Part shown: positions 7,081 through 64,000 of the stretch, in pieces
Numbering within the stretch: the first letter of the stretch is position 1
Layout of the letters: each line of letters begins with the position of its first letter
Assembly: GCA_950097015.1 (NCBI GenBank)
Contig: CATNEN010000025.1
Span: 5,704,001-5,768,000, forward strand
From: Macrostomum hystrix
Lineage: Eukaryota > Animalia > Platyhelminthes
DNA length: 64,000 nt
Direction of reading: 5' to 3'
The notes under the pieces: generated by a model
What the model was told of the DNA's origin: nothing
Seen by the model: only the letters and a program-made list of their open reading frames with translations
Databases searched by the model: none
Program-made: the position numbers and the translations under genes

Positions 7081-7190
7081 ATTTTTTATGATAGATTAGA
7101 TGGGCGAATGATTCTGTAGTAGTTAGTACTTTAGTAGTTAGATTTTTCAACTTTAATTACTTTTGTAGCTGTCAGTTATTTTGTTCGAAT

Positions 7191-19345: not shown

Positions 19346-20143
19346 TCAATTTTTAAACGGAGCTTGATAGGTTAGCACAAGAAGCTTGCGATTCGCACAG
19401 ATAGTTTTATATCCCGGATAATGTTGACTGATTCGACGCAGTCTGGCTGTATTGTTGTCCAAAACAACAATGCTACCTCCTGGTCGCAGAAGGTTGGTCA
19501 AGCACTCCGCTAGTCCACCCTGAAGCGTCTCCTTGGCATTGGCGTAGCTCAGGGTGATCAAGTCGTATTGAACGGCTGCTTGAAAGCCAGCTCCAATGTC
19601 GGCCATTGCTTTCAAAATCATAGCCTTACGGAGCACAAAGTTGCGCATTTCGGCGGTGCAAAAATCTGTTATAACCTTCGGGCAGTTGAACTCCGGGTCT
19701 CGGATTAGTCGCCTACTCGTCAGCTGCTCAACTTTCTGCTTGAAGCTCTTCCGATCCCAAGGCATCAGATCGACTCCTGTACACTGTATGCTGCACTTTG
19801 CCGACAGTCCCTGGTCTAACAGGCACTCAATGCCAGCCAGTAGGTCGCTTCCAGGACCGCAGCCCAGCGATAGCAGGCGCACTTCGGTCTCCATGGGCCT
19901 CAGTTTGAGTAGACGCTCGGACGGCTTTCTGAGCCACTTGAGCGCCACCCTGGCCCGCTTGGGCATCTCGTGCTTGGCGTACTGCAGCCGGAAGCTCTCG
20001 CTCTGGTAGTGCGACAGGTTGTCCTTGTCCGGCGTTTGGCGCCAGAGCTTTAAAGTTTCGGATTCGGACATTGTGTTGAGTGAATGCTCGTGTATAGTCT
20101 CTTGTTTTGAAGTTGTAGTATGCATCCGCAGTATCCGAGCCAT
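19346..20143 (-). CDS. Intronless class I SAM-dependent methyltransferase-like protein, 265 aa
   Basis: Motif I RLLSLGCGPGSD, acidic post-I motif GVDL, and later YDLITLSY and LLRPGGSIVVLD motifs. Kozak accATGG lies 5 nt after a CTAACAG acceptor-like site. Confidence 0.8.
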   Translation of the reverse strand: MARILRMHTTTSKQETIHEHSLNTMSESETLKLWRQTPDKDNLSHYQSESFRLQYAKHEMPKRARVALKWLRKPSERLLKLRPMETEVRLLSLGCGPGSDLLAGIECLLDQGLSAKCSIQCTGVDLMPWDRKSFKQKVEQLTSRRLIRDPEFNCPKVITDFCTAEMRNFVLRKAMILKAMADIGAGFQAAVQYDLITLSYANAKETLQGGLAECLTNLLRPGGSIVVLDNNTARLRRISQHYPGYKTICANRKLLVLTYQAPFKN

Positions 20144-28100: not shown

Positions 28101-29234
28101 TCAACTTTTCGACTTCAATAGGAGCGACAAAAGGCTGAACAAGAGCTTGCGGCGCGTCAGGCCGCCAGAAAAACGCACAAAGAGCACGACGCCGATGCGG
28201 ATGCCAGCGCTTTTAAAGAAGAGGCCCTCGACCCCGAGAAGCTTGCCCGCACTGATCAGCCATTGGACCAGGCTGTGACCTTCCTGCGCCCCTTGCTCAC
28301 ACTCTGCTCAGATAGTGTAGAAGCTCAGTGCCTCGGCTTCGATGTCTACAGAGCGCGACAAAGGCCTCTTTTAATGCTTCGCTGTCTGCTTAAAGCCAGA
28401 TCTATTGACTCCAATCATCTTTGGCTGCACGCCTGCCTAGTTCGCTTCCTGGCTATGACGGCCGATCAACAGGGCGCTATGGCTGCCATGGAGCCGGCAG
28501 TTCGCGGAATGATCGTTCAACACCTGCCAGATCTGTTTGGCGACGCTAAAGTCTCGCCTACCGAATACAATCAGGCTTTCCTGGCTAAGAGTGCCGGCAA
28601 TCTAGAGTACACCTTCTGGGGTATGATCGGATCAGGATCTCGTGTTTTTGTGTTTGAGTATTCCGTGTTCAGAAGTAATGTCTATTTGAAGGAACTAAAA
28701 AAATCAGAGTCTTGTGGTTTCAGGGTTCTCGAATATAATTTTTTTATCAGTGGCAGGATCAAGTATCCAAAAAGTCAAGATTTACAGTCGGGATCAAGAA
28801 TCGGGAAGTGTTAGGACTAAGAGTTTGGATCAAATATGAGGATAAACTGCTCAACAACACATCGTTTTGCTCCCTACCTGTCTTACTGTCGTTTAGGTCT
28901 CCGCCTGAAGTACGAGCTGGAAGGCTCTGGCAGTCAATCTGCCTGCCTGTCTGGCCTGACCGCCGCCCTATCTGGCACCGGTCTGGAGCGCCAACTTGAT
29001 GCCTGCTCGCGCGCCTACGCCGATCTGCGCGCCGGCGAATTATTCGGCCAGGTGGAGCCGGCAGAATTAGATCGGGTGCGCAGTCTGCTCAGGGAATTAT
29101 TCCCATTCTCTAAGGATTTCATGTCAGCCGCCGATGCAGCCGCAGCTGACTCTGTGCCTATTAAGATTGCGCCACGGTCAATTATTAACGGTTGCGACTC
29201 GGCTGATGCTAGTAATGGCGAGGAGCGGCACTGA
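22150..29234 (+). CDS. NAA15: N-alpha-acetyltransferase NatA auxiliary subunit, about 890 aa; exons 22150-22215, 25335-25419, 25511-25615, 25696-26861, 27576-27989, 28122-28620, 28897-29234
   Basis: Recognisable motifs [13 protein letters not shown]|[43 protein letters not shown] and [18 protein letters not shown]. All junctions are GT-AG and phase-consistent (2673 nt). Confidence 0.95.
27221..27292 (+). tRNA. tRNA-Pro (CGG), inside NAA15 intron 4
   Basis: Acceptor stem GGCCAAA/TTTGGCC, anticodon arm CTCGC-TTCGGGT-GCGAG, T-loop GTTCGAATC, and a downstream T-run terminator. Confidence 0.95.
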
Positions 29235-33048: not shown

Positions 33049-36011
33049 ATGTCCCTGTACGACGATCTTGACGTCACACCCAGTGGCGGTAGCGGCAGCA
33101 CTGGCGGCGTCGGTGGCGGCGGAAGTGCCGCTTCTGGCTGGAGTCTGCCAATGCAGAAGACCCTGCTACTGCAACAGCAGAAACGATTGCAGCAGCAGCA
33201 GGCGGCTGCGGCTGCGGCGGCGTCTGGCACCGGCAGTGGAGGAGCTGGCCATCAGCGCACAGGCAGCGGCGGCACCACGTCGTCCTCTGGCCCGACTCTG
33301 GCGCCAGTGTTAAATTTGCGTGGCGGAAAACAGCAGCGCGACTCGCGACACGGCGTTATTGTTGGCAATCTGGGCAGCGGAATAGGCGGCGGCGAATACC
33401 GGTTTGTTGCTTATCGGAATTGCTAAATAATACATGCAGCTAGAGGCTAGAGATCTTGAGTATCTAAGGGCCCGGTGAATGTCTAAATCCCGCCTGGCCT
33501 CTCAACATCTACTCCATCTTATAGATCTCCCCCGCGTCATCTCTCCACAGTCTCTGCGGATCCTATTTCATCTCCCCCACGTCATCTCTCCCCTGTCCTA
33601 TCTAATGGGGATCTTATCTCATCTCCCCCCACTTTATCTCTCCCCTATCTAAGGGGATCCTATCTTATCTCTCCCCTGTCTAAGGGGATCCTATCTCATC
33701 TTCCCCAGACATCGTGCTTACCACAAATACAGACCATTGTTCTGTAAAAAAAGCGTCTATTCATCCGTATTCAACAAGCTGTTAGTTGTATTTGGCCTGC
33801 TGTTCATAGGTTCAACCAGCGCACCGGGCGCATGGAGCGAACCGAGCTAACCGCCGCTGTCGGCCCTAAAGCCGGCGTCAACGATCCAACCCTGGCTCTG
33901 GGACCAGACGACGATTATAACCCGTTTTATCCTAACGAGTACGACGAAGTTGTCGGCATGGTTCGAGCGAAACGAAAAATGCAAGAATTAGCCGATACAG
34001 ACAGACAGGCAAAAGAGAAGCAACAGAAGCGGCAGCAGCAGCAGCAGCAACAGCAACAGCAATCGTCTAGCCATGATTCTGATGGCAGCTTCGACCGGTC
34101 GGGCTCAGACAGCGAAGAAGAAGAGGAAGAGAAAAAACGACGCATGGGTCGCGGCGCTTACATCGCTCCGCCCAGCTCACTACTTGAGCAGGACTCAAAG
34201 CCAACTAGCGAACCGCCAGCTGGCGCCGCCGGCTCTTCTCAGTTTCCGCCGTTTGGCGGCAAGCAGAGCCTAGCCGAGAAGCACAATGTTAGCAATGCTG
34301 CTGCCAAAATGATGGCCAAAATGGGCTATAGACACGGACAGGGCCTCGGTCGCGAAGGCCAGGGCATGGCATCGGCCCTCTTAGTAGAGAAGACAAGCAA
34401 ACGCGGAGGAAAGATAGTCAGCGAATTGGATCGCTATAAGAATCCGTCCCTTGTAAGTAAAAAGCTGGGGCAAGAGGGAGTTCATATCTGGCTTTTTAAG
34501 GATTTATTAAAGCGAGTGTAATCTTCCGCAAACTCCAGCCCGCGGGCCAGGTGCGGCCCTCAAAGCTCCCAAGTCTCTTCCCGTTGCCACTTCTAACACC
34601 TATGGTATCCTGTCTCATATTCCCGTCTTATCTGAAGATAAAGAGTCTCATCTCTCGTTTTTCATCTCTCCCCTGTCTCATCTCTCCCCTGTCTCATCTC
34701 TCCCCTGTCTCATCTCTTCCTTGTCTCATCTCTCGTTTTTCATCTCTCCTTGTCTCATCTCTCCCCTGTCTCATCTCTCCAGTGTCTCATCTCTCCAGTG
34801 TCTCATCTCTCCAGTGTCTCATCTCTCCAGTGTCTCATCTCTCCAGTGTCTCATCTATAGTTTTTTATCTCTCCCTGTCTCATCTCTTCCCAGTCTCATC
34901 CCTCCCCTGTCTCGTCTATCCCGTGTCTCAACTCTCCTGTGTCTTATCTATCCCCTGTCTCATCTCTCCCCTTCCTCATATTGCTACAGAAAAAGCGGCC
35001 CGCTGTCGTATTTTAGGTTCTCTGCGTGACACGCACGCTAATAAGTTTGCCGACCCCTGTTCTACATAATATCCCTAAGCTCATATCCCTTAAACTTATC
35101 GCCTAAATTCACTCATGCACCATTTTCCCCTAATTAACTTTCCATCCCTAGACCCCAGTTCCCCAAAATATAATGCTCTATGTCCCAATTAACTTCAAAT
35201 CCCTTAAAATTCACATTAACTTAAATTCGCATTTCGCAACCCACAAACTTCTCATCCCCTAATCTTCCCATTTACTTTATTTTAAATCCTCGAATTTCGT
35301 TTCCACAAAACATGTAAAAATTCCGTTAACCGTTCAGCGAATATACGTAGGGTGTCCCAGAAATAGCGGGAAAAATCGATGCACAGGCAAACTGGTGAAA
35401 CATAGTTTATTGAAACTTATGTCACTGATAAATAAACATTCAGCAGTTCTAACGCTTTTTAAATTAAGTAAATATGTCAATTCATTAAAAAGTTATGGCT
35501 AAAATTAGAACTGCTGCCGGTTCAGATACATTTGTGATGTGATGAAAACAATTTACAGGCTATTTGACACAGCTTTGCGTGATATGCATTCCACCAACTC
35601 TGATTAAAAAAGCGACACATATCTTAATGGAATTGTTGGAGAATTCCCCCCCAATATAAATTGTGTTACTTTTAATGTGTCCCCCTTCCCCAGGTGATCA
35701 TGCTCACCAACATGGTGGGCCCCGGCGAGGTTGACGACGAACTAGAAGACGAAATCAAAGACGAATGCCAAAAGTACGGCCCAGTGGTCCTAGTTACTAT
35801 ATATGAACTGCCGCAGCCAAATCTACCAGCAGAGGAGGCTGTTAGAATCTTTGTCGAATTCGAGCGCATGGACTCGGCTATTAAGGCTATGAACGAACTG
35901 AATGGCCGATTCTTTGGCGGCCGCACTGTCACTTGCCGATTCTACGATACAGAGAAGTTTCGCGACTTAGAACTCGATGGCCTGCCTTTGCCTTTGGAAT
36001 TGAATGAGTAA
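33049..36011 (+). CDS. RBM17: Splicing factor 45 (G-patch plus UHM), about 437 aa; exons 33049-33401, 33810-34452, 35694-36011
   Basis: MSLYDDL N-terminus, DDYNPFYPNEYDEVV, RGAYIAPP, G-patch KMMAKMGYRHGQGLGREGQG and UHM NMVGPGEVDDELE...LNGRFFGGRTV. Junctions are in phase. Confidence 0.95.
33520..33700. repeat. Degenerate ATCTCTCCCC satellite remnant in SPF45 intron 1
   Basis: Resembles the 16-bp family. Confidence 0.55.
34610..34980. repeat. 16-bp TCTCATCTCTCCCCTG-family satellite in SPF45 intron 2
   Basis: Direct reading of the monomers. Confidence 0.85.
35345..35520. mobile_element. Possible Tc1/mariner-type MITE remnant
   Basis: TAGGGTGTCCCAGAAA resembles TACAGGGTGTCCC-type termini. The second end was not found. 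Confidence 0.3.
35534..35608 (+). ncRNA. Box C/D snoRNA family A, copy 1 (SPF45 intron 2)
   Basis: C box GTGATGA at 35539-45 and D box CTGA at 35600-03, preceded by TCCACCAACT, which is complementary to conserved 18S AGTTGGTGGA. It ends 90 nt before the 3' splice site. Confidence 0.8.
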
Positions 36012-42300: not shown

Positions 42301-42436
42301 TTCTAAGAAAATTTAAATGTTGATTCTGAGTTTTCTCGATTCAATTGTTGTCAAGCGAGCTACTCTACCTGAATTATTGGTATCAATTTACCTTAATATG
42401 GCAGGTTATCAGTTTGAGCTGCACTACAAACTTATC

Positions 42437-45400
42437 ATGGTTAGTCCAGGCGACACTACTCAAACTGCTACTGGGCAGGACAATTCACCTGCCAGCCTAA
42501 AATCGGCCGGCAATCAGGAATTCCAATTAGGGAATTATCAATCGGCGCTGGATATTTATAGTCGGGCCCTAGGTCAGCCTGGTAGCCTTCCAATCGACCT
42601 GTCTCTGGCGTTGCGTAGCAACCGAGCACAGTGCGCGTTAAAACTCGGCCAACCCGAGTCCGCTTTAGCCGACTGCTCAGTCGTGCTCGAGCACCGGCCT
42701 AACGATCCTAAAGCTCTGTTCCGCCGGGCTCAGGCCTACGAAATGTTGAACAAACTGGCCGACGCCTACAAGGATGCTAGTCAGCTGTTTAAACTGGATC
42801 CCGGCAATAAGGCTGTGCAACCAATGCTGGCGCGACTACAGGTAGGAATTTGTTTTGGAGCTCGGCGAAGGTCTCATTAGCTTGGGCCGCTTGCCGCGCA
42901 ATTTTAGTGTTTTTTTTAAGGCTAACCTGCAGAGTACAGTGTGAGAGTTTACGATTTCCGACCATAAGAAAGTCAGGGCAGATGTACTATAATATAATAA
43001 TAATATAAAGCGCACGCCATCAATAATAATAATAATAAATCAAGGTAACACTCCCAGTGCGACTAGTCAAAGTTTCTTCTCGTTGGATACGGGTCTTGTG
43101 TTACCAATAATATATACTCGTATAGTCATAAAATATACACCCCAATCGGGCCAAATGTGCAGCCGACAGCACAGCCGCAGCTATTGCGCGGCGCATCTGT
43201 AGGCTTCGTAGGGCTGTCCAGTCCATGAACTGGGGGGACTCCGCACCCACCCTGAATTACCCCAGCTGATGCTGGTACCCATTTCACAATCGAAGCTAAA
43301 AGACACATTTTCCAGTGGCGTTGGGAATCAATTTCACCAAATCATGTGTCAGTGCCCACAGCCCATCTGCAATTATTATATTTTACACACTAAGCGATAA
43401 ATAAAACCACCTACTTATAGTAGCAATAGACAATATATAAGGAAATGTTTTTTATCCCTGATATATTGCAATGATGAAAAAATATTTTATCAGGCTATTT
43501 TGATTTTTAAACAAAAATCTGATATTCATACTCCACCAACTCTGAATATTCTTTTATAAAAAAGAAACGTTAAACGATATGCAACTACGAATCAAACCAT
43601 TCTTTTTTTTACATCGGATCCTCATTCATTATTAAAACATATTCGCTAGGTGGCCCTGGAAAAGCGTCGGGAAGAGGTCGGCACAACCGAGGCCAAGACT
43701 CGCTCCATGCTGGACATGATTGTTGGCGATGAAGTCGAAACTGACGAAGAGAAGCGCGTACAGTGTCTGAATAACATGACCGCTCTGTGCCGCCAGCCTC
43801 CCTGCCGAGCCGCTCTGTGGGACTCGGCCGGCCTAGTGCCCCGGCTCCTTCAATTGGCCACTAAATCTGTGAACTCTTCTCCTAATACCTTTGAAGCAGC
43901 AGCTCGCCTATTGTCTAGCCTTACCAAGGACTCGCCTGACCGAAGTCGCATTCTATTGGACACGCTATCTGTTCAGGGCGTGCATCGCCTGCTAGTACTT
44001 TCTGAGTCTGAGCCTATTTCTAGGTCTCTATTGATGCTGCTCAAATCACTGGTGTGGGAGATGGCCGGCATTGAGGAGTACAGGTACGAGAGGCCATGTC
44101 TACGTGTCTGTTATTTGGGAATGGCATGTTCTTTTGGCTTTTGTAATGGCATGTCTTTTAGGCTTTTGTAATGGCATGTCTTTTTGGCTTTTGTAATGGC
44201 ATGTCTTTTAGGCTTTTGTAATGGTATGTCTTTTAGGCTTTTGTAATGGCATGTCTTTTTGGCTTTTGTAATGGCATGTCTTTTAGGCTTTTGTAATGGT
44301 ATGTCTTTTGGCTTTTGTAATGGCATGTCTTTTTGGCTTTTATAATGGTATGTCTTTTTGGCTTTTGTAATGGTATGTCTTTTTGGCTTTTGTAATGGCA
44401 TGTCTTTTAGGCTTTTGTAATGGTATGTCTTTTGGCTTTTGTAATGGCATGTCTTTTTGGCTTTTATAATGGTATGTCTTTTTGGCTTTTGTAATGGTAT
44501 GTCTTTTTGGCTTTTGTAATGGCATGTCTTTTTGGCTTTTATAATGGTATGTCTTTTTGGCTTTTGTAATGGTATGTCTTTTTGGCTTTTGTAATGGTAT
44601 GTCTTTTTGGCTTTTATAATGGCATGTCTTTTTGGCTTTTGTAATGGCATGTCTTTTAGGCTTTTGTAATGGTATGTCTTTTGGCTTTTGTAATGGCATG
44701 TCTTTTTGGCTTTTATAATGGTATGTCTTTTTGGCTTTTGTAATGGTATGTCTTTTTGGCTTTTGTAATGGCATGTCTTTTTGGCTTTTATAATGGTATG
44801 TCTTTTTGGCTTTTGTAATGGTATGTCTTTTTGGCTTTTGTAATGGTATGTCTTTTTGGCTTTTATAATGGCATGTCTTTTTGGCTTTTGTAATGGCATG
44901 TCTTTTTGGCTTTTGTAATGGCATGTGCGTTGGCTTTTATAATGGCATGTGCTTTGGCTTTTATAATGGCATGTGCGTTGGCTTTTATAATGACATGTGC
45001 GTTGGCTTTTATAAATAGCATGTGCGTTGGCTTTTATAATGGCATGTGCTTTGGCTTTTATAATGGCATGTGCTTTGGCTTTTATAATGGCATGTGCGTT
45101 GGCTTTTATAATGGCATGTGCGTTGGCTTTTATAATGGCATGTCTTTTTGGCTTTTATAATGGCATGTGTGCTTTGTGAAGTGTTAATAGTATCATGCTT
45201 TTATGATAGGAGAGCATGCATTTTCACAGACGTGTTTTAATTGAAAGAAACTTACTATACTATGATGCGCTTAAACAATAGATACTACTGATCTCTACTG
45301 ACGAGACTCGGATCTGATCATACTATGTGCGTTTTGATCTTCTAGCTTAATTTTGTAACTTTGTTCTACTCAATAAAAATCTGCTCAACTTTCCTTTCGC

Positions 45401-48400
45401 AGGCAACGCCGCGGCAAAGCCGAGGAAGAGCGCCGTAAAGCCTTGTCAATGGGAATGATTGCTAAGCCGCTGCCCCAGCTGCAGCTGTCTGAAGATATTG
45501 CTATCAGGATTGACGCCCTGCTGCGCGAACTGCTGCAGGCTTCGCATAGCAACCGACTGCAAGCCTACACTAGGGATGCTGTGCTAGAGCTACTGGTCAT
45601 GCTCATCAACAAGAAGGAATCTCTCACCTGGTATAAACAGTTCATAGATTGCGGCGGTATTGAGACTATACTCAATGTCACCTGCGCATTTCACAAAGGC
45701 TCGCACGAGCATCTGAAAGTGACTGAGGACACTAGGCGACACGCGTCTCTGTTGCTGGCTAGAGTGTACGAGGACCTGACCTCCGATCAGCTGCGCCAGG
45801 CCTTTCGCGACGCCGCCTCCACCTTTGTCATGGACCTGCTGACTGATAAGTTCTTCGACTCCAAGATTGAAGCTTTGAATGCGCTCAGCGCACTGTTGGA
45901 GGGGCCGCACGAGATTGCTCAGTCTATCATTGGCAGCGAAGGCATTCTGGAGGGTGAGTGAACTTTTTTAACTTTTTGCTAAAGGACACAATTTTTTCAA
46001 GTGGATTTGGGAATCGAACCCCCGACCTTCAAGTTATGATGAGTCCGACGATCTAACCACAATAGGTTACAACCCCATTCATTGTAGTGACCCTTGCATT
46101 ACCTGTTTATCTACATCTAGGCGAAAATGGTTTTCAAGCTGTCACCAAAATGACTGCCGCCAGTGCCCACAGCCCTCCTGCAATCATTTTTTATCTTAAT
46201 CCTTATAGGAGTTCTACTCCTAGCCCAGAGCGGCATCGAGCTGCACCAGCGACTGGCCTTAGAAACATTAGTACTGGCCATCAGTAAGAAGGCCAAAGCT
46301 GATTCTGTACTGCGCTCAGCTCTACCCGTACTTCAGAAGATGTACACTAGTGGCAAGGATGCTATTAAAGTTCGAGCCCTGGTTGGCCTGTGCAAACTGG
46401 GCACCGCCAGCGGCTCGGACAGCTCCGGCCGTGGCCTGGCCGACGGCTCCAATCTGGTGCTGGCCAAATCGTGCCGACGCTTTTTAGCTAATCCGGACAA
46501 AGACCTAGATCTGCGCCGATGGGCGGTTGAGGGACTGGCCTTTCTATGTCTGGATGCCGAGGTGCGCTTTATAAAAAATCATTTCCCAGTCCTTCATTCA
46601 GTTGGTCATAGCCCAGTCCTTCATTCAGTTGGTCATAGCCCAGTCCTTTATTCAGTTGGTCATAGCCCAGTCCTTCATTCAGTTGGTCATAGCCCAGTCC
46701 TTTATTCAGTTGGTCATAGCCCAGTCCTTTATTCAGTTGGTCATAGCCCAGTCCTTCATTCAGTTGGTCATAGCCCAGTCCTTCATTCAGTTGGGTCATT
46801 GCCCAACCCGTCCTTCATTCAGCTTGGTCATAGCCCAGTCCTTCATTCAGTTGGTCATAGCCCAGTCCTTCATTCAGTTGGTCATAGCCCAGTCCTTCAT
46901 TCAGTTGGGTCATTGCCCAACCCGTCCTTCATTCAGCTTGGTCATAGCCCAGTCCTTCATTCAGTTGGTCATAGCCCAGTCCTTCATTCAGTTGGGTCAT
47001 TGCCCAACCCGTCCTTCATTCAGCTTGGTCATAGCCCAGTCCTTCATTCAGTTGGTCATAGCCCAGTCCTTCATTCAGTTGGGTCATTGCCCAACCCGTC
47101 CTTCATTCAGCTTGGTCATAGCCCAGTCCTTCATTCAGTTGGTCATAGCCCAGTCCTTCATTCAGTTGGTCATAGCCCAGTCCTTTATTCAGTTGGTCAT
47201 AGCCCAGTCCTTCATTCAGTTGGTCATAGCCCAGTCCTTTATTCAGTTGGTCATAGCCCAGTCCTTTATTCAGTTGGTCATAGCCCAGTCCTTCATTCAG
47301 TTGGTCATAGCCCAGTCCTTCATTCAGTTGGGTCATTGCCCAACCCGTCCTTCATTCAGCTTGGTCATAGCCCAGTCCTTCATTCAGTTGGTCATAGCCC
47401 AGTCCTTCATTCAGTTGGTCATAGCCCAGTCCTTCATTCAGTTGGGTCATTGCCCAACCCGTCCTTCATTCAGCTTGGTCATAGCCCAGTCCTTCATTCA
47501 GTTGGTCATAGCCCAGTCCTTCATTCAGTTGGGTCATTGCCCAACCCGTCCTTCATTCAGCTTGGTCATAGCCCAGTCCTTCATTCAGTTGGTCATAGCC
47601 CAGTCCTTCATTCAGTTGGGTCATTGCCCAACCCGTCCTTCATTCAGCTTGGTCATAGCCCAGTCCTTCATTCAGTTGGTCATAGCCCAGTCCTTCATTC
47701 AGTTGGGTCATTGCCCAACCCGTCCTTCATTCAGCTTGGTCATTGCCCAACCCCAGTCTTCCTGTTAGTTGGTCATTGCCCAACCCCAGTCTTTCTGTTA
47801 GTTGGTCATTGCCCAAACCCAGTCTTACTGTTAGTTGGTCATTGCCCAAACCCAGTCTTTCTGTTAGTTGGTCATTGCCCAAACCCAGTCTTTCTGTTAG
47901 TTGGTCATTGCCCAACCCCAGTCCTACGGTCAGTTGGTCATTGCCCAACCACAGTCCTTCGGTCAGTTGGTCATTGCCCAACCACAGTCCTTCGGTCAGT
48001 TGGTCATTGCCCAACCACAGTCCTTCGGTCAGTTGGGTCATTGCCCAACCACAGTCCTTCGGTCAGTTGGTCATTGCCCAACCACAGTCCTTCGGTCAGT
48101 TGGTCATTGCCCAACCCCAGTCCTACGGTCAGTTGGTCATTGCCCAACCCCAGTCCTACGGTCAGTTGGTCATTGCCCAACCACAGTCCTTCGGTCAGTT
48201 GGTCATTGCCCAACCACAGTCCTTCGGTCAGTCGGTCATTGGCCAACTTCAGTCGTTTAACCCAATCGCTTACCAATTTTACATTTTTTATAAAGTTGTA
48301 CCTATCAACAAGACGAAACTGGGTTTTAACAGGTGAAAGAAGACCTATGCGAGCATACGGACGCACTGCAAGCCCTCTCAGACTTGGCCCTGCGCTCGCG

Positions 48401-50240
48401 CGATCCGGCCATTGTGTATCCGTGCGCAGCCGTTCTGGTCAACCTGACAAACAGCTACGACCGGCAGGACGTCATGCCAGAGCTAGTTGAGCTGGCCAAG
48501 TTTGCTAAGCATCACGTGCCCGAGGAGCACCCAAAAGATGGCCACGACTGGGTTGAGGGACGAATTAACAAATTAGTGAAAGCCGGAATGCTGCCAGCCC
48601 TGGCCCAGCTGGCATCCGTTTCTGATAAGGCTCTACAGGTGAGGCTGGCTTCTCAGCTGCATTGTTTTACAGGTTTTTGAAATAGAAGAAAGCTTCCAAA
48701 CGTAACGGAATAACTACTCAAGTAACGCCTCCGGTGACAGAAATTACTGCTTTCTCGAATTGAGCAGCTAAACGTATTGTCAGAGGAAGGAAGCCAGAAG
48801 CAATTAATGCACAATGCGGGTAGCACGACACAATGACGATACGAACTCTTTGAACTCTGTAATATTTACGGATAAGAGACAATCATCTTGTGCATCTTTT
48901 ATAATTAAAAACAATCCAATATAATAAATAAAAAGTTTAAATGCGCTGGCAGTTAGTTGTACTAGAGAAAACCGCCTTATAATCCACCTAGCTTCAATAG
49001 ATAATATATAGAGGAACAGGAACAGGAAACATGATCCAAAGTTCTCTCGATTAAGTGTCCCTTCTATATATATGGACGCAAATAATTACAGGTAACCAAC
49101 ACCTGCCGCGAGCTGCTCAGCCGAGTGTTCCTGGCAGCTCTGACACTCCCTGAGCACCGCGGCCCGGCCGTGGCAGCCGGCGCCGTTAAGTCGCTGCTCT
49201 CCCTGGCCAATGGTCGCAACACAGACGGTGGTCAGGTACTGGCAGCGCAAGCCTTAGCCAGGCTAGCTGTCAGCCTCAATCCGGAGACCGCTTTTCCCGG
49301 CCAGCGGGCCGCCGAGCTGGTCCGGCCGCTGAATCAGCTGCTGCACGCCGAGGCCAATTCTCTGCAGGTAAATTGTTGTTTTAGTGTATTGTTGCAGATT
49401 ATTCTGACACCTGAGTTTCAAGCTCAGCTTACCAGTTCTTACATCCTGACCAAACCTGTACTCAAATATCAGGTGTACGAAGCCCTGCTAGCCCTGACCA
49501 ATCTGGCCAGCTCCAGCGACAGTCTCCGCAGCCGCCTGTTATCCGAGATCGGCCTGGCCCGCATTCGGCACTACATGTACGATGACCACAGGCAGTTGAG
49601 GGCTGCCGCCACCGAGTGCTTCTGCAATCTCTGCCTCTCGGATAAGGTTGGCGACTCCATGGCTGCCGCCGCTGCCGCTGGCACCTCCGAGGACGTCAAA
49701 CTGTTGCTACTGTTCTGCGCGCCGCCCAGAGACGACGAGCCAACAGCGGACAAGGATAAACTGATGCCGATCGCCGAGGGCAGCCAGGACGATGGCGACG
49801 GTGATGGCAAGCTGGAGCCTCTGGCCAAGCCCGAGAATGATGACGAAGCCGCTGCCGCTGCTCTGCCAGCGGAGGCACAGGAAACTCCGGCTGATCGGGA
49901 GCGCCTCATGCTAGCCGCTTCCGGCGCACTGGCTCACCTCACCACCCGGGTGGAGATTGTCGGCCGGATGCTGTCCTACCCCATGTGGCCGGACGCCATG
50001 TCTCACCTGGCCTCGCACCCCAACCCGCTGATTGCCCATCGCGGGCTTTATATTATGCGCAACGCGTGCGTCAGCAGCGACACGGAGCTGGCAGCTCGGG
50101 TGGCCGCCTCGCCGCTGCTGGAAGTGCTGATGGCCGTCAGCCGGCTGGACGATCCGGCATTCAAAGCTGCGAAGGAGCTGGCCAAGGAGGCGCTAGACTG
50201 TCTGGCCAAGGCCGGCTTCATACGGTCTGTGGCACCCTGA
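42437..50240 (+). CDS. UNC45: UNC-45 myosin chaperone (TPR, central ARM, UCS), about 1030 aa; exons 42437-42841, 43650-44083, 45403-45953, 46209-46561, 48333-48638, 49092-49367, 49473-50240
   Basis: TPR SNRAQCALKL...PKALFRRAQAYE, KVRALVGLCKLG, WAVEGLAFLCLDAEVKE, LAKFAKHHVPEEHPKD, AAQALARLAVSLNPE and EALLALTNLAS. Junctions are phase-consistent (3093 nt). Confidence 0.95.
42930..42990 (+). mobile_element. SINE family B fragment
   Basis: AAGAAAGTCAGGGCAGATGTAC is shared with the 8391-8770 element. Confidence 0.55.
43140..43330 (-). mobile_element. SINE family A partial copy
   Basis: GCAGCCGACAGCACAGCCGCAGCTATTGCGCGGCGCATCTG is identical to the sequence near 60200. Confidence 0.75.
43462..43550 (+). 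ncRNA. Box C/D snoRNA family A, copy 3 (UNC-45 intron 1)
   Basis: C box ATGATGA at 43471-77, guide ACTCCACCAACT at 43530-41 and D box at 43542-45; 104 nt before the 3' splice site. Confidence 0.82.
44110..45170. repeat. About 25-bp satellite (GGCTTTTGTAATGGCATGTCTTTTT) in UNC-45 intron 2
   Basis: Direct reading of the monomers. Confidence 0.95.
45257..45322 (+). ncRNA. Box C/D snoRNA family B, copy 2 (UNC-45 intron 2)
   Basis: ATGATGC at 45262, the same CAATAGATACTA-CTGA as copy 1, C' TGACGA, and TCGGAT-CTGA at 45314; 85 nt before the 3' splice site. Confidence 0.72.
45975..46075 (-). mobile_element. SINE family A head fragment
   Basis: Contains TTGCTAAAGGACACA, GGGAATCGAACCC and GAGTCCGACG. 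Confidence 0.65.
46575..48250. repeat. 27-bp satellite (CAGTCCTTCATTCAGTTGGTCATAGCC) with drifting variants, in UNC-45 intron 4
   Basis: Direct reading of the monomers. Confidence 0.96.
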
Positions 50241-51099: not shown

Positions 51100-51520
51100 G
51101 GGTAACGGGCCAATGAGCGGGCCAACCAACGGGCCGGTTTAGAACGGGCCAATCAGCGGGCCAACCAGCGGGCCGGTTTAGAACGGGCCAATCAGCGGGC
51201 CAACCAACGGGCCAACCAGAGGGCCGGTTTAGAACGGGCCAATGAGCGGGCCGATGAGCGGGCCAACCAACGGGCCGGTTTAGAACGGGCCAATGAGTGG
51301 GCCAGTGAGCGGGCCAACCAACGGGTCAGCCAGCGGGCCAACCAACGGGTCAGCCAGCGGGCCGGTTTAGAACGGGCCAGTGAGCGGGCCAACCAGCGGG
51401 CCCAGAAGCGGGCCGTAGAACGGGCCGATTTGAGAGACTCGTCGATTTGGAAAAATGAGCGGGCGTTTAGAGCGGGCTTTTCTGACACGAAGTGGCCGAT
51501 GAGCGGGCCAATTTCAATGG
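51100..51520. repeat. GC-rich 12-15-bp minisatellite (CGGGCCAA.../CGGGCCGGTTTAGAA)
   Basis: Direct reading of the monomers. Confidence 0.85.
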
Positions 51521-52111: not shown

Positions 52112-55100
52112 TTACGCTGCCTTGATAACCTGCGTTCTGGCTAAATAGAACTTCTTAGTCGTTTCCACCACCCAGGAGGAAATCTGCTTCGGGTAGGTTG
52201 CTGCCTGTGAAGCGGTGTCAGTGGCCCTGTTCTTCGGAACAACGTCGCACTGAGTCATGGCGAAATTGATCTTGTTGATCATGGACAGCACATCGTGATC
52301 AGCTGCCAGCTCGTAGGCCACTGTGCAGAACGCGCTGATAAATCTGGAACCGCTGTAGGCCAGTCCGAAGCACTTGTTTCCAGGCGTGGTGGCATGTCCG
52401 ATGATTAGCCCGGCGCAGTTGGGAGAATTATCGATTAGTGACACGCTCTTTGAGTCGTAATAGGCTGCACCGTATCGCCAGGCAGTGTTTCGCGCACTTC
52501 GGCCCAGCGGGGCCGGGTTGCTGTATTCGCTACTTGCAACCGACTCCTCATCTATGCGGCAGGTGTTGACGAGGATCAGCTTGGGCCGGCCAGCCAGTGC
52601 GTTGGAGTTGACAAATGGCTGTGTTAACACCTCAAGTGAGATTCGCTCTCCGTCGTTGCCGTAAACAAAGTCATTGCTTCCATGTGAGAGGATCACAAGA
52701 ATAGCAAAGTCTCCATGTGCAGGTTTGGAACCAGTTTTTTCGTCTTTATTTTTCTCAGCGCCGTCACCTGCGAAACTAGTTATATCGTCCAGCATTTCCT
52801 GACAGGCTTTGTCTGTCAAAACTGTGATGTTTTGTGTCAGGTAACCCAGCTTTGAGAAAAGGTCTAGCAGGTTCTGTACGTCGAGTCTCGTGCCTCTCCG
52901 GAAATCATTGTTGCTCTTGAATTTCTCATTCGATATAATCAGAACCCGTCCGTTGCAGCTGTTGACATAACTTTCGTCCGCGTCTTGTCGTATGAGTGAA
53001 ACACTCTTTGCAAATGGGTTAAAATCTTCCCATTCGCACTGCACTGCAACTTTCTGTCTGAGAAGGCTGCTCTCGAAAGTGCGAGCTTCGACTCTAAGCT
53101 TTACACCATTTTGAAGCCGGTTAATCATGCTGAAATTCGGGTGCTTCAATGACGTCAGCTCAACGAAGTTCAATGTGCTTATGCACGGTCTTCCTCCTGG
53201 ATAGTCTTCGTCCTCTGTTTTGTCATACCAATCTTTAATCTGAGTCAAAAACAACTCTAGACCTGATACATCAGCCGCCAGATACAACAGGAAAAAGTTC
53301 TTTATGTCAAATGCCGGCGGTTGACGAAGTGCTGCGATTTCTTCCTTTGTAGCTTCAGTCGGCGTTTCGTTAAACGGTATCTGCCGACAGAAAATCAACA
53401 GCTTGGGAGACTCGCTCGACAGTACCTCCATCCCTTCAATAGCTTTGATTGGAGTGTGCTCGTGAGTCTCGCAATCATTTGATTGGAGTTCCCAATACAC
53501 AAATATCGAAACCTGATTAGTCTTGTTCACCTTGCTCCTGCTTTCAGCAGCGCGAGCGCCTTCAATGAATACGTTTAGTCCGATGCTTCTAAACCAATTC
53601 TCGTAGACTTCGAGAATGGCCTTCTTTTCGACATCTTCAGAAAAGTCCACAATGTAGGCAGCTCCGCGGCTGTTGTCTGTAACTAAGAGCGAATCGGTGG
53701 AGGTTTCAGATCAACTATTCCATGTTTATTGCGTTTGCTTCATTCCGTTTTTTCACGGTCATTCGTTAGATTTCTTAGACAGTTAAATTGTTATTCAAAC
53801 AAACCATGTATGCCGCTTTACGAATTTCTTGGCAGCCCCATTGCACTAAACTGCAAAACTGCTTATTACTTCATATCGATGCTGCATGTAGGACATATCT
53901 TTTTGCAAAAATGAGAGATATATAATGAGATAATGAGATAACATTTACGAGTAATCTTATATGAGAGGAACCTTTAATAGGCCAGATTAGCTAAAAAGAA
54001 TCTACATACTCTCAACGATTATGCTCAACAGTCCCTAACATCTGAGACATCTGGAGAAGGATTTTTGTAAACAGTTGTGTTCGTACGAATAATACGTGCT
54101 TGTAGAACTTGCAGTACTGGTGGGAAAAGGTGTGAAAATTTGATTGCGAAACTAGACTGCGATAGGTATATTTGAAAGCAACTATAACAATACGTCAAAA
54201 CTCACTGGGAACAAGACTGCTGGGCTTGCCTTCATGCCTGCCGCTAGGCCGACTGCCACTGTCGTCTAAAATTGGACCGTTTCAGTATTTAGCGAAATTC
54301 TGCTTGCATAAAAAATTAACTTACAGCTCTCACTACCAAGCTCCGAAGAACTTACCAGCCGAAGCAGAAGTGGTCAAGTTCGGAACTGCGGCATCAGGCC
54401 GTTCTTTGTGGTGTGCCATTTCTTCTCCCAGGCTTACTAAAAACCGGGGAAAAAGAATAAGCGAATAATAAAATACAACCCAAAGTACAAAATTGATTGA
54501 TCACACTTTTACAACTACAAAACCCGCGTAAAACATTTAGCTACTAATGTGCTCAGTATGTGCGTGTATGTGCTCAGAGGTCAACGGAAAGGCATGAAAA
54601 ATCGCCTATTCACGCGATGGATATTTCCAGAATGTTCTCAGTTCCATTCCAACAACTATTAATTAGCAGCCTGCGATCGCACAATCTTAACCCCTTTCAC
54701 TATTCTTATCAGAAGTTAATCAACAAACAAAGAACCACCGCCTAGCTCTTGTCTCAGTCTTTTTAAGCACAACAAAATGGTGCGTCCGTGGCCATTGTCC
54801 CATGCAACAATCAGTACTATATAATACTCGTAGTATACTCGGATAGAATCGTAAATTAACACACCTTCTGCTTCACTACTACCGCACGGATCGGACAGCT
54901 TTGTAGAGCTGGTTCCAGTGACGTTCGGACTTTCGCCCATCGCACCGCAGTCTGGAATGTTGTCAGATATGGTGGATTTGGAGGAATGAGATATTTCCAA
55001 AACGGCACGGGCGATTTGGAATGATAAAACAAGCTTTTTGTTTTGAAAAGCTGAATGTTGGTGGATGCCTCCTCGGTTTAAATTGAGCTGGAAATGGCCT

Positions 55101-55869: not shown

Positions 55870-57900
55870 TGGCGCGGTCAAAATGTCGTAGGTTGCGGCG
55901 AGGATGAGCGTTTGGTGTATGACCAAGACGTCCGATGTTGAGCTGCTACAAGAGCTAGGCGGGATTGCTTATCGCAGGAGAGAAAGTCCAGGCGACTGAC
56001 CTGATTTATTGTCTGTTCGCGCACGTCACCAATGAAGATTTTACAACTGAGCACTCGCGGATGCTGTCCTCGCGGCTGGGGGCGGGCCAAAGCGCAGCGA
56101 GTGGTGGATGAGAGTAAGAAGGCCGCCCCTCTGCCCCCCCCCCGATGGTCTGTCTTGGCGGAGGATGGAGTAATTGGCGATCTCTGGCAGTTTAGTCCCG
56201 GGACTAAGTTTGGTTTCTTGGACTAGTTGTCTGAGATTCCAGGAACAGTTTAAGCTCCGACCACCTGTTCGCGTTCCTTTGGCAGATGGGCTGAGGGGTC
56301 GATCTGGGTTGGCTGGTGTGTCCAGGCCACGGGTTCTCTTCGATGTCGCCAGCCCAAATAAGAAGCTCGCCGATCAGCCTGGCCGGCAAGGGTTGTCTGC
56401 GTACCGAAAAATGGACGATTGACGTTGCAGTTGTTCTTATTATTTGCAGGGGGCCCGGGGCACTTGACGCACAAGCGCAGGAACGGCATGCCTCCAGGCC
56501 GGCGAACTAAGCGGGAGTCGCCCATCGCGCCATCTGGACCCCTGGACTCAGGCAATTCACACACAGCCGCAAGCCAAGCGGGGAAGGGGGCGGCAGCCGG
56601 AGTGCCTCTCACCCCAGGCCCGCACACGCACAGAGCAGACCAAACCAGGGGAGGACTTAAATGCCTGAAGGGTAGGGACGAGAGGACCAAGCCACGCGCG
56701 CAGACGGCTGGTGACACCCGCCGCTCAGAGCACGCATGGCTGGTGCACACCCGCCCCACCCCCCATACAACGCCTCACACCCGGCCCAACGCACAAACAC
56801 AAACTCACACAAGCAGGCCTGCAGAAGGCAGGGGTTAAGCTATTTAAATTAGCTTTGGTTGCACAGAAAAAGGTGCATCTCCGCAAGTCACTGCTTCGCA
56901 AACCTCCAACCAAGCCCGAAATTAATCGTGACTTGGAGGGAGGAACGAACCAGGGACTATTGGAAAGTGAGGCAGCGACACTAGCCGCTGACCCACTCAC
57001 CCCCCTGACGTTGCAGTTGACATTGACGCTGACTTTCCTGATGGCTGCCTCCATCGGGGGCCCTTGATCAGGGGCCTTGAGAAGGCGTGCGTCCCATTTG
57101 CTCTCGGGTCTGCGGCAGGCGTACCGGAAACGTCGAGAGTTCGAACCACCACGAACAGGCGGGTCGCATAGGTCGGATTTCTTCCTTTGTTGCTTTTTAA
57201 TCGTATATGCTGACAGAAAATCAGCAGCTTGGGAGACTCGTCTGACAGTAAACTTTTAATACCTTTAAATAGCTTCGATTGGGTTATGCTTTGGTTCGAT
57301 ATAGTCTGGACTTCCTTAAACTTTCATTCTATTTGCAATTATATCTTGTTCATTGCTAATTTGCTAATTTTTCAAAGGCAGCTAAATTTGGTGACTGCTG
57401 ATTTTTTTGCAAGATTTTATGCCATTTTTCAATTTATACCCATAGACTCATAATCATAGTTTTTCCGGATGGCTAAAAACAAGAAACAGGGAAGGAACAA
57501 TTAAGGAAATATTTATCCAGGACAGAAGAGTTATTTTATTTTCTCTTCAAAATCTTTTTTCCCAGCGAAAGAAAATCTAATCATCTCGGGAGGAGAGACG
57601 GAGCGGTACCGCACCATCATTCACACCGAGGTCCCTGAGCTCGATTCGGTTGCTAGGCGAGTCTCAGGTATCAGCGGAATGGGCGAATGCCCGTCGCATC
57701 AGAGCCCACATCATCCCTACAATACTATACTATAAGTATTATTTACCATCTTGGCTTAAACCGCAAGGATCGGACAGCATTGTTGAACTGGTTACAGTGG
57801 CGTTTGCATTCGCCGTATTGCCGCAGTCTGAAGTGTGTACAGGCGAGCGAGCAATTTACAAGAAGAATACAGAAAATCTAGATACAGAAGATTTTGCGAA
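55870..57900 (-). pseudogene. Degraded paralog of caspase-like gene 1, split by a retrotransposon fragment
   Basis: About 57200-57330 encodes KHNPIEAI*, then frameshifted GIKSLLSDESPKLLIFCQ (gene 1: EHTPIKAIEGMEVLSSESPKLLIFCR). About 57747-57870 matches the 54865 exon (SDCG...SSTMLSDPCG), with CAA changed to TAA. Confidence 0.7.
56030..57078 (-). mobile_element. 5' fragment of an Ingi/I-group-like non-LTR retrotransposon: 5' UTR, 2A-like peptide and start of APE endonuclease, frameshifted
   Basis: LLIWAGDIEENPWP, then ICQRNAN...ELKLFLES, QETKLSPGTKLPEIANYSILRQDRP and GGLLTLIHHSLRF, which are typical APE N-terminal motifs. Confidence 0.75.
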
Positions 57901-59029: not shown

Positions 59030-59910
59030 ACAGGTAGATGGCGGAAGGTGACAGGTAGATGGAGGAAGGTGACAGGTAGATGGAGGAAGGAGACAGGTAG
59101 ATGGAGGAAGGTGACAGGTAGATGGAGGAAGGAGACAGGTAGATGGAGGCAGGAGACAGGTAGATGGAGGAAGGAGACAGGTAGATGGAGGAAGGAGACA
59201 GGTAGATGGAGGCAGGAGACAGGTAGATGGAGGAAGGAGAAAGGTAGATGGAGGAAGGAGACAGGTAGATGGAGGAAGGAGACAGGTAGATGGAGGAAGG
59301 AGACAGGTAGATAGAGGAAGGAGACAGGTGGATGGAGGAAGGAGACAGGTAGATGGAGGAAGGTGACAGGTAGATGGAGGCAGGAGACAGGTAGATGGAG
59401 GAAGGAGAAAGGTAGATGGAGGAAGGAGACAGGTAGATGGAGGAAGGAGACAGGTAGATGGAGGAAGGAGACAGGTGGATGGAGGAAGGAGACAGGTAGA
59501 TAGAGGAAGGAGACAGGTGGATGGAGGAAGGAGACAGGTAGATGGAGGAAGGTGACAGGTAGATGGAGGAAGGTGACAGGTAGATGGAGGAAGGAGACAG
59601 GTAGATGGAGGAAGGTGACAGGTAGATGGAGGAAGGTGACAGGTAGATGGAGGAAGGTGACAGGTAGATGGAGGAAGGTGACAGGTAGATGGAGGAAGGT
59701 GACAGGTAGATGGAGGAAGGAGAAAGGTAGATGGAGGAAGGAGACAGGTAGATAGAGGAAGGAGACAGGTGGATGGAGGAAGGAGACAGGTAGATGGAGG
59801 AAGGTGACAGGTAGATGGAGGAAGGAGACAGGTAGATGGAGGAAGGTGACAGGTAGATGGAGGAAGGTGACAGGTAGATGGAGGAAGGTGACAGGTAGAT
59901 GGAGGAAGGT
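59030..59910. repeat. 21-bp purine-rich satellite (GGAGACAGGTAGATGGAGGAA)
   Basis: Direct reading of the monomers. Confidence 0.96.
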
Positions 59911-60455: not shown

Positions 60456-60489
60456 CTTGTGAGGCATATGTAGGACAGAGCAAACAGCA

Positions 60490-62735
60490 GGTTAAACATT
60501 GGGGATTAAGCAAACCAGACAGAATCGAAGGAGGTTAAACATTGGGGATTTAGCAAAGCAAACAGAATCGAAGGAGGTTAAACATTGGGGATTAAGCAAG
60601 CCAGACAGAATCGAAGGAGGTTAAACATTGGGGATTAAGCAAAGCAAACAGAATCGAAGGAGGTTAAACATTGGGGATTTAGCAAAGCAAACAGAATCGA
60701 AGGAGGTTAAACATTGGGGATTAAGCAAACCAGACAGAATCGAAGGAGGTTAAACATTGGGGATTAAGCAAACCAGACAGAATCGAAGGAGGTTAAACAT
60801 TGGGGATTAAGCAAAGCAAACAGAATCGAAGGAGGTTAAACATTGGGGATTAAGCAAAGCAAACAGAATCGAAGGAGGTTAAACATTGGGGATTTAGCAA
60901 ACCAGACAGAATCGAAGGAGGTTAAACATTGGGGATTAAGCAAAGCAAACAGAATCGAAGGAGGTTAAACATTGGGGATTAAGCAAACCAGACAGAATCG
61001 AAGGAGGTTAAACATTGGGGATTAAGCAAAGCAAACAGAATCGAAGGAGGTTAAACATTGGGGATTAAGCAAACCAGACAGAATCGAAGGAGGTTAAACA
61101 TTGGGGATTAAGCAAAGCAAACAGAATCGAAGGAGGTTAAACATTGGGGATTAAGCAAAGCAAACAGAATCGAAGGAGGTTAAACATTGGGGATTAAGCA
61201 AAGCAAACAGAATCGAAGGAGGTTAAACATTGGGGATTTAGCAAACCAGACAGAATCGAAGGAGGTTAAACATTGGGGATTAAGCAAAGCAAACAGAATC
61301 GAAGGAGGTTAAACATTGGGGATTAAGCAAAGCAAACAGAATCGAAGGAGGTTAAACATTGGGGATTTAGCAAAGCAAACAGAATCGAAGGAGGTTAAAC
61401 ATTGGGGATTAAGCAAAGCAAACAGAATCGAAGGAGGTTAAACATTGGGGATTAAGCAAACCAGACAGAATCGAAGGAGGTTAAACATTGGGGATTAAGC
61501 AAAGCAAACAGAATCGAAGGAGGTTAAACATTGGGGATTAAGCAAAGCCAACAGAATCGAAGGAGGTTAAACATTGGGGATTTAGCAAAGCAAACAGAAT
61601 CGAAGGAAGGTTAAACATTGGGGATTAAGCAAAGCCAACAGAATCGAAGGAGGTTAAACATTGGGGATTAAGCAAGCCAGACAGAATCGAAGGAGGTTAA
61701 ACATTGGGGATTAAGCAAAGCAAACAGAATCGAAGGAGGTTAAACATTGGGGATTAAGCAAAGCAAACAGAATCGAAGGAGGTTAAACATTGGGGATTTA
61801 GCAAAGCAAACAGAATCGAAGGAGGTTAAACATTGGGGATTAAGCAAACCAGACAGAATCGAAGGAGGTTAAACATTGGGGATTAAGCAAAGCAAACAGA
61901 ATCGAAGGAGGTTAAACATTGGGGATTAAGCAAAGCAAACAGAATCGAAGGAGGTTAAACATTGGGGATTTAGCAAAGCAAACAGAATCGAAGGAGGTTA
62001 AACATTGGGGATTAAGCAAAGCAAACAGAATCGAAGGAGGTTAAACATTGGGGATTAAGCAAAGCAAACAGAATCGAAGGAGGTTAAACATTGGGGATTA
62101 AGCAAAGCAAACAGAATCGAAGGAGGTTAAACATTGGGGATTTAGCAAAGCAAACAGAATCGAAGGAGGTTAAACATTGGGGATTAAGCAAAGCAAACAG
62201 AATCGAAGGAGGTTAAACATTGGGGATTAAGCAAAGCAAACAGAATCGAAGGAGGTTAAACATTGGGGATTAAGCAAAGCAAACAGAATCGAAGGAGGTT
62301 AAACATTGGGGATTTAGCAAAGCAAACAGAATCGAAGGAGGTTAAACATTGGGGATTAAGCAAAGCAAACAGAATCGAAGGAGGTTAAACATTGGGGATT
62401 TAGCAAAGCAAACAGAATCGAAGGAGGTTAAACATTGGGGATTTAGCAAAGCAAACAGAATCGAAGGAGGTTAAACATTGGGGATTAAGCAAAGCAAACA
62501 GAATCGAAGGAGGTTAAACATTGGGGATTTAGCAAAGCAAACAGAATCGAAGGAGGTTAAACATTGGGGATTAAGCAAACCAGACAGAATCGAAGGAGGT
62601 TAAACATTGGGGATTAAGCAAAGCAAACAGAATCGAAGGAGGTTAAACATTGGGGATTAAGCAAAGCAAACAGAATCGAAGGAGGTTAAACATTGGGGAT
62701 TTAGCAAAGCAAACAGAATCCAAGAGGTTAAACAT
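60490..62735. repeat. 43-bp satellite (GAATCGAAGGAGGTTAAACATTGGGGATTAAGCAAAGCAAACA), about 52 copies
   Basis: Period measured directly from 60522 to 60565. Confidence 0.97.
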
Positions 62736-63012: not shown

Positions 63013-64000
63013 TCACCCAGTGAAGTAAAATCGCTTGACAGTTTGTACAGTCCATGAAGACACCTGCTGTGATTGTGCGTGTGATTCTGCTTGTGATTCT
63101 ATTTTTTTCCTTGCCTGCGTCATTATGTAATTCACCCAGTTAATCATGGACACTACATCCAGCTCATGAGCCCTCTTGTAGTAGACTCGGCACAGACTGT
63201 TGATAAAACGCGAACCAGTGAAGCTGTTTTTATAACAAAAGTCTCCATCAGCAGTTGAGTAAGCCACAATCAGTCCTGAACTGTTCGGTGACGCGTCGAT
63301 TAAATATACCGAGTTGGTGTCGGCATTCCATCTCGCATTCTGCAGCGCCAAATCATTATGTTGTCCAGCTTCACTGCCCGTATTCGTACGGGACGATTTT
63401 AGCAAACCGCTTTCACTTTTCGTGGAATTGCGACAAGCTCTTATTATAAAAAGTCTTGGCTTTCTAGCTAGCTTTTCCGATCTAGCCATGATGTCGGTTA
63501 GCTCTGCAACTTGGCAGGATTGATTTTTGTCATCGAGAAGGCAACCATTATTTCCGTGAGACAAAACTGCGAGAATGCAAGAATCCAGGTGATCATCTCT
63601 TTTAGAGAACTTTTCTATTGCTTTCTTTATGGATTTTTTGTCGGTGACTTCCTTTTCAGAGACCGTATAGCCAAGCCACTCAAAGAGATCCGTCAGATTT
63701 TGCTTGTCTATGCAAATAGCCTTCCAGTCATTGGCATCTGATTCGTTGTATTTGACGAATAGAATAAGTGCAAGTCCTTTTCTGTGGTTCTCATAGCATG
63801 GACCAACGGAACTTTCGTCGATGTTTACTTCTTTTATCGACGTCTGCTGGGCCTCTTTCAGCTCTGGATCCGCCTTCAAAAGACAGTCCTCGAATTTTCG
63901 AGCCTCTAGAGTGAGCCTTTCCACCGAAGATAAGTGCTCGCATTTCTTTTTGTATATTTCTTTAGCTTGTTGTAACGTTTTTACAGCTTCGCTGATAGTC
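63013..64000 (-). CDS. Caspase-like protein 3, partial; the frame stays open past the window end
   Basis: LAVLSHG, PRLFIIRACR and GSRFINSLC. LTLEARKFEDCLLK aligns to gene 1 LRVEARTFESSLLR. Confidence 0.85.
   Translation of the reverse strand, partial: TISEAVKTLQQAKEIYKKKCEHLSSVERLTLEARKFEDCLLKADPELKEAQQTSIKEVNIDESSVGPCYENHRKGLALILFVKYNESDANDWKAICIDKQNLTDLFEWLGYTVSEKEVTDKKSIKKAIEKFSKRDDHLDSCILAVLSHGNNGCLLDDKNQSCQVAELTDIMARSEKLARKPRLFIIRACRNSTKSESGLLKSSRTNTGSEAGQHNDLALQNARWNADTNSVYLIDASPNSSGLIVAYSTADGDFCYKNSFTGSRFINSLCRVYYKRAHELDVVSMINWVNYIMTQARKKIESQAESHAQSQQVSSWTVQTVKRFYFTG

Follow-up and report, generated by a model that had tools for sequence, protein, structure and literature searches.

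What stands in front of the protease domain of an unusual flatworm caspase: a prodomain peculiar to its lineage, or a second, catalytically dead caspase fold? The gene that raises this question, here called gene 1, lies in a 64,000-nucleotide stretch of the Macrostomum hystrix genome (assembly GCA_950097015.1, contig CATNEN010000025.1, positions 5,704,001 to 5,768,000), which we refer to as the window and in whose coordinates all positions are given. The original prediction read the front part of the protein as a degenerate caspase, which together with the active domain would form a single-chain inactive/active pair. We arrive at a different account, which we hold at roughly even confidence: the locus codes for a caspase peculiar to its lineage, with a long prodomain, and belongs to a same-strand tandem array; the front domain is a globular orphan.

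Gene 1 encodes a caspase domain with an intact catalytic dyad

Judged by its sequence, the C-terminal half of gene 1 is a caspase domain with the His/Cys dyad intact. It comprises the last 270 residues, and the Pfam family Peptidase_C14 matches at 52145..52951 on the minus strand with E 3.7e-25 (cut-off 21.4 bits). More than 140 distinct caspase sequences in the Protein Data Bank (PDB) matched this half, the closest solved relatives being CED-3 (1.8e-14) and caspase-2 (~1e-11). CED-3 has the identical segment ILVILSHG. The catalytic His is part of SHG (52679-52687, residues 331-333) and the catalytic Cys is residue 373 in NTCR (52556-52567); the dyad aligns with SHG and QACR of CED-3.

The canonical Asp-binding S1 set is incomplete. 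Aligned with CED-3, the first Arg is present (FRRGT), but Gln is replaced by Asn (QAC to NTC, 52556-52567, minus strand) and W-R by F-G (52355-52372, minus strand). In the paralogue described below as gene 3, the counterparts of these positions are RAC and Y-K.

The hexapeptide KSVSLI occurs twice in the protein, at 52988-53008 (residue 224) and at 52430-52450 (residue 410), both on the minus strand. One copy stands just before the caspase domain and the other before β5 in the intersubunit linker, the two usual positions of processing in caspases. The copies differ synonymously in four of their six codons and are therefore not a recent DNA duplication. By our own post hoc estimate, the chance expectation for such a 6-mer repeat is ~0.006. 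KSVSLI may represent a recurring motif for processing or recognition; at the second site gene 3 reads NSVYLID.

The gene model and the tandem array

Gene 1 is a real gene, probably of two exons: its frame is open over 521 codons, its match to Peptidase_C14 is strong (the E-value given above) and it aligns with CED-3. The single open frame runs on the minus strand from 53676 to a stop at 52112. This stretch (52112..53676) would be exon 2, which holds the remaining coding sequence, stop included, for the prodomain, the linker and the caspase domain. The 5' end of exon 2 has no in-frame ATG and starts directly after a ttacag acceptor at 53682-53677, so that 53676, with which the original prediction closed its interval, is indeed the first base after the acceptor.

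A candidate exon 1 lies upstream at 54865..54951 on the same strand. An acceptor-like ttccag site stands before it, its ATG is at 54940, and it closes at a GTGTGT donor. Its coding part is 76 nt (25 codons plus one base, phase 1), an exact phase match to the acceptor at 53677, where G + AC gives an Asp codon. The predicted intron between the two exons (53677..54864, minus strand) is 1188 nt long and has the form GT...ttacAG. The exon 1 block is also the only block upstream of gene 1 that is kept in a decayed neighbouring copy, at 57760..57836 on the minus strand (79% over 81 nt, blastn). Exact-product look-up of the ATG- and GTG-started open reading frames (ORFs) returned no record.

Other ways of starting the protein were considered. 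The Macrostomum spliced leader, which we take to end in ATG, was rejected as a source of the start codon: its ATG would not be in frame with exon 2 at either of the AG sites near 53677-53684. The ttccag site before the exon 1 block could be a spliced-leader acceptor, and the block is present at gene 1 and at the decayed copy. N-myristoylation of the MGES… start was rejected as well, on what we take to be the PROSITE pattern, as Glu follows Gly.

The window contains three same-strand copies in a tandem array: gene 1, the decayed copy and gene 3. Satellite arrays separate the three. In the decayed copy, the exon 1 block and a piece of the N-terminal half are the only conserved parts. The latter piece, a pseudogene remnant of the N-terminal domain at 57159..57290 on the minus strand, corresponds to residues 78-111 (tblastn E 0.001; blastn 71% over 129 nt) and is surrounded by stops and frame changes. 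It retains SPKLLIFCQ, as the original prediction had observed.

Gene 3 (63013..64000, minus strand) is a paralogous caspase that matches Peptidase_C14 with E 1.3e-30 and shares 33% identity with the caspase domain of gene 1. Its reading frame has not closed where the window ends, and its N-terminal domain lies beyond that point. The stretch before its caspase domain is homologous to residues 192-241 of gene 1 (z 3.8; 10 of 2000 shuffles), which bears out the earlier remark that the two genes share the linker. In gene 1 this linker (52952..53077, minus strand; residues 201-242) is probably helical and then acidic (…RQDADES…). The remnant at 57159-57290 and the linker in gene 3 suggest that the front domain is common to the paralogues.

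Between the decayed copy and gene 3 lie two highly regular satellites, at 59030-59909 (a 21-mer repeated 42 times) and at 60489-62735 (a 43-mer repeated 52 times), with 95-96% matches. Just downstream of gene 1, a GC-rich 39-63-nt repeat occupies 51104-51414. A GC-rich island (56250-56840) between gene 1 and the decayed copy carries overlapping ORFs on both strands, none of which has a Pfam match. This island may be an insertion that contributed to the break-up of the decayed copy. Pfam searches of the ORFs between gene 1 and the remnant, made in search of a hidden upstream domain, returned nothing.

The front domain is a coding orphan

The domain at issue occupies 53078..53676 on the minus strand, residues 1-200 of exon 2, and consists of hydrophobic runs that alternate with amphipathic helices. 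The front 236 residues belong to coding sequence: the frame stays open over this length in none of 20000 shuffles (analytic P ~7e-7), and the other frames hold 12 and 17 stops.

The exon 2 translation served as the query in all searches. Pfam, NCBIfam and PADLOC, searched with the front half whole and in three pieces, gave no family at E up to 10. A word-index protein search with the N-terminal half and gene 3 as queries found no relatives; the same search with the whole protein was blank, which is uninformative on caspase relatives. An exhaustive phmmer search of the N-terminal half against 1.84 billion protein representatives yielded no match at E up to 0.001. The ESM Atlas feature search with this half found nothing, and neither did two metagenome scans, one with the N-terminal half and one with the caspase alignment. 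The survey of homologues across species that the original prediction proposed thus turned up nothing in any searched collection.

Structure prediction with AlphaFold, from single sequence without an alignment, reached a predicted local distance difference test (pLDDT) score of 31 for the whole exon 2 protein and 38 for the N-terminal half. The genuine caspase domain was left unfolded too, and AlphaFold therefore neither supports nor refutes a pseudo-caspase fold. Foldseek on the low-confidence model of the N-terminal half gave noise matches only. Two low-confidence models place strands in the N-terminal half at residues 5-11, 37-40, 56-62, 93-97, 128-133 and 169-173, and helices at residues 16-31, 111-116, 137-153 and 182-188. 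In the genuine caspase domain, such models recovered α1-3, β4, β5 and α5. On this pattern the front domain most likely belongs to the α/β class. Two arrangements would fit the pattern equally: a caspase topology, or five β-α units of flavodoxin/TIR-like type (residues 5-153) followed by a helical linker.

The stretch of gene 3 that corresponds to residues 164-236 helps to weigh these two arrangements. This charged segment has matches to coiled-coil and helical chains only, and it falls where the caspase topology needs its α5 and β6. This strengthens the flavodoxin/TIR-like option.

Is the front domain a dead caspase?

The reading put forward by the original prediction is that the front domain is a strongly diverged, catalytically dead caspase copy, packed onto the active domain as its built-in partner in the manner of a single-chain cFLIP/caspase-8 pair. 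Such a domain could have originated by read-through fusion of two adjacent intronless copies in the tandem array. We regard this reading as possible but doubtful.

Its starting point is sound as an observation. The six strings that were compared with caspase landmarks all occur, in frame and in the order given, in the long minus-strand ORF: SRGAAYIV (53648-53671), WFRSIGLNV (53570-53596), VSIFVYW (53492-53512), SPKLLIFCR (53384-53410), DIKNFFLLY (53282-53308) and LFLTQIKDW (53228-53254), all on the minus strand. Under the corresponding alignment, which is of low reliability, the front His is lost (YWE) and Cys-Arg remains (FCR). In number and order, the hydrophobic and amphipathic segments agree with β1-α1-β2-α2-β3-α3-β4-linker-β5-α4-α5-β6 over ~195 residues. 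A tandem array of single-exon caspase bodies makes a fusion easy, and the design of a dead and a live caspase in one chain exists elsewhere (PMC12292325, PMC4715348).

Alignments with a low gap penalty add to this side. The N-terminal half scored z 1.1-2.8 against the two caspases of the window, compared with -0.4 to 1.0 for five controls (both caspases reversed, a Rossmann-type methyltransferase ORF, NatA and UNC45). These loose-gap alignments are collinear, pairing FRSIGLNV with FSKLGY, PKLLIF..CR with PKLILVNTCR and SMINRL with SMINKI of the N-terminal and C-terminal halves, respectively. However, the top z of 2.8 is one among 16 combinations of parameter and target. The excess corresponds to about p = 0.01-0.1 after several parameter choices, which is suggestive and not evidence of homology.

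The calibrated tests, in contrast, were all negative, and a resemblance of the landmarks beyond chance is not confirmed; the excess of the loose-gap alignments is weak and depends on the parameters. Neither the whole N-terminal half nor its pieces matched Peptidase_C14 at E up to 10, and phmmer of this half against all PDB chains found no caspase. Comparison by hhalign with the aligned pair of window caspases gave a probability of 0.25%. The N-terminal half received -1.3 bits from a local hidden Markov model built from the same two caspases, a score equalled or exceeded by 52 of 500 shuffles (p ~0.1). Smith-Waterman alignment of the N-terminal with the C-terminal half gave z = -1.0, and global alignment z = -0.85. 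The comparison of the N-terminal half alone with Peptidase_C14, by which the original prediction proposed to check itself, therefore came out negative. Of the two findings that it named as telling against a dead caspase, the lack of Peptidase_C14 similarity is what we observe; the other, a different fold, turns on the AlphaFold models, which are uninformative at pLDDT 31 and 38.

A dead caspase would also have to be reconciled with the known examples of such a design, in which the dead domain is recognisable from sequence (caspase-16 and caspase-X), as it is not here. In addition, the region proposed as α5 and β6 corresponds to the charged segment of gene 3 described above, and residues 5-153 fit a five-unit β-α fold as well.

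Comparison with known single-chain and flatworm caspases

The original prediction knew of no described family with a front caspase-like domain and a rear active one. Such families have been published. The prodomain of mammalian caspase-16 is CASc-like, ~204 residues long and similar to its own catalytic domain, and it is without the His and Cys (PMC12292325). The exons for prodomain and catalytic domain are homologous, and an intramolecular interaction has been proposed but is untested (PMC12292325; Eckhart et al.). Like caspase-16, gene 1 has a front domain of ~200 residues before a caspase domain with a His/Cys dyad, and its front domain is without a long intersubunit linker. Unlike in caspase-16, front and rear show no detectable similarity and are encoded in a single exon. 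The caspase domain itself is nearest to CED-3 and caspase-2, and not to caspase-14.

Caspase-X of the coral Acropora has 721 residues with an inactive and an active caspase domain (PMC4715348). Deletion of the inactive domain raised its killing of HeLa cells, and the model proposed for it resembles cFLIP/caspase-8 (PMC4715348). Like caspase-X, gene 1 combines a front domain and an active-type caspase domain in one chain, and a regulatory role of the front domain may be supposed here. However, both domains of caspase-X are called peptidase_C14/CASc by searches, whereas the front half of gene 1 is not. Any pseudo-caspase origin here would be independent of caspase-X.

The functional model behind the original prediction was cFLIP(L)/procaspase-8 (PDB 3H11, cited in PMC4715348), in which a dead fold tunes an active one. 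In that system there are two chains with DED prodomains, and cFLIP is clearly caspase-8-like in sequence, whereas any such pairing in gene 1 is hypothetical. The dead/live single-chain design is therefore not new in itself, and the claim for gene 1 is unproven. If the dead-caspase fold is nevertheless correct, which we consider rather unlikely, it would be a third independent origin of this design that has diverged past sequence recognition.

Among flatworms, a survey of lophotrochozoan caspases described ANK caspases and one kinase-like prodomain in Macrostomum lignano (PMC11463336), with no other unexpected flatworm prodomain (PMC11463336). Gene 1 belongs to the same animal group and, like these caspases, has a prodomain that is neither CARD nor DED. 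In contrast to the ANK and kinase-like prodomains, which are recognisable Pfam domains, the prodomain of gene 1 is not.

Other identities for the front domain

What the readings named here leave over falls to another α/β fold or to a new fold.

Alternatively, the caspase may be fused to a diverged PONY (DCUN1) domain of the DCN1 type, an all-helical module that binds cullin and E2. We think this improbable. The sole calibrated match of the N-terminal half is chain 3kev_A, a DCUN1-domain protein of Galdieria (E 0.004-0.005, 19-20 bits). This weak, collinear similarity extends over 78 residues, aligning residues 15-92 of gene 1 (53400-53635) with chain residues 3-81 at ~28% identity with one 1-residue gap, and includes KKAILE, EG, W.L and CE. 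The match begins at the N-terminus of the 199-residue chain, and the domain lengths agree. Human DCUN1D1 is presumably collinear further on, which we take as a lead and not as a test.

However, the match is lost once the first 23 residues, which include the KKAILE hexamer, are trimmed, and Pfam Cullin_binding is not matched. No other DCN1 chain of the PDB is among the matches listed, and the second half of the domain is without a DCN1 match. In the low-confidence models the hydrophobic runs form strands and not helices, and the ESM Atlas feature search offered no support. Caspases of the genus Macrostomum reportedly carry many unrelated modules (PMC11463336), but a caspase-PONY fusion was not found in the literature. 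The match has a bearing on the dead-caspase reading too: because, by eye, the motifs of the N-terminal half can be paired with the unrelated, all-helical DCUN1 domain about as well as with caspases, landmarks chosen by eye cannot carry the claim of a caspase fold.

It is very unlikely that the front part is not a working domain, being either a decaying relic or an untranslated stretch that precedes an internal start codon, Met 83 of exon 2. Exon 2 does lack an ATG of its own, and the neighbouring copy has decayed. Against this stand the 236 open codons with the P value and the stop-rich other frames given above, the phase-matched and conserved ATG exon upstream, and the conservation of the linker in gene 3.

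Least probable of all is a hidden death-fold prodomain (CARD, DED or PYD) of the kind found in CED-3 and caspase-2: although the caspase domain is closest to CARD caspases and a CARD caspase-2 has been published in flatworms (PMC11463336), no CARD, DED, Death or PYD match appeared at E up to 10, no death-fold chain was among the PDB matches, and 200 residues with six long hydrophobic runs are unlike a six-helix bundle of 90 residues.

A possible role for the orphan prodomain

We return to the account that we favour, a lineage-specific caspase whose long prodomain is a globular orphan. By analogy with other long-prodomain caspases and with the caspase-X experiment, the front domain most likely has a role in controlling dimerisation-driven activation. 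As in other long-prodomain caspases, it would determine when the protease domain can dimerise. This could be achieved in two ways. The front domain may recruit the zymogen to a partner, or it may sit on the protease. In either case, it could be released by cleavage in the acidic linker, which reads …RQDADES… in gene 1 and is conserved in gene 3 as …IDES….

Some points weigh against this account. Exon 1, the expression and the true N-terminus of gene 1 are features that we infer. The assignment of the front domain to the α/β class draws on models with pLDDT <50. Finally, the alterations of the S1 pocket make cleavage after Asp itself uncertain, and the P1 specificity of the enzyme may differ from Asp.

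Neighbouring genes and repeats

Beyond the caspase array, the plus strand of the window carries a gene for a NatA auxiliary subunit (25668-29234; E 3.6e-91), a G-patch protein gene (33832-34521) and an UNC45-like gene (42317-50240) with TPR and UNC45-central domains. A single-exon methyltransferase-like ORF lies on the minus strand (19346-20143); its match to Methyltransf_23, E 1.5e-4, is below the cut-off. Minisatellite-like arrays occupy 295-7150, 8925-10328, 12191-13198, 17085-19031, 44111-44924 and 46600-48336, some of them within introns of the UNC45-like gene. These arrays give huge spurious ORFs in several frames, e.g. with …SHLSRVSSLPCLISP… units.

Implications for caspase diversification

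If the front domain proves to be a dead caspase fold, it would be the third independent built-in regulatory partner after those of caspase-X and caspase-16. Gene 1 would then offer a small, intronless and easily expressed test case for the control exerted within a single-chain pair. If it is instead a PONY domain, the protein would wire a cullin/NEDD8-E2 module directly to a caspase, an undescribed link between neddylation and caspase activation.

Taken together, the genus Macrostomum seems to attach many different front modules to its caspases, of which the published survey contains one unusual case. A further family with an orphan prodomain of ~200 residues, arranged in a tandem array, adds to this picture of rapid caspase diversification.

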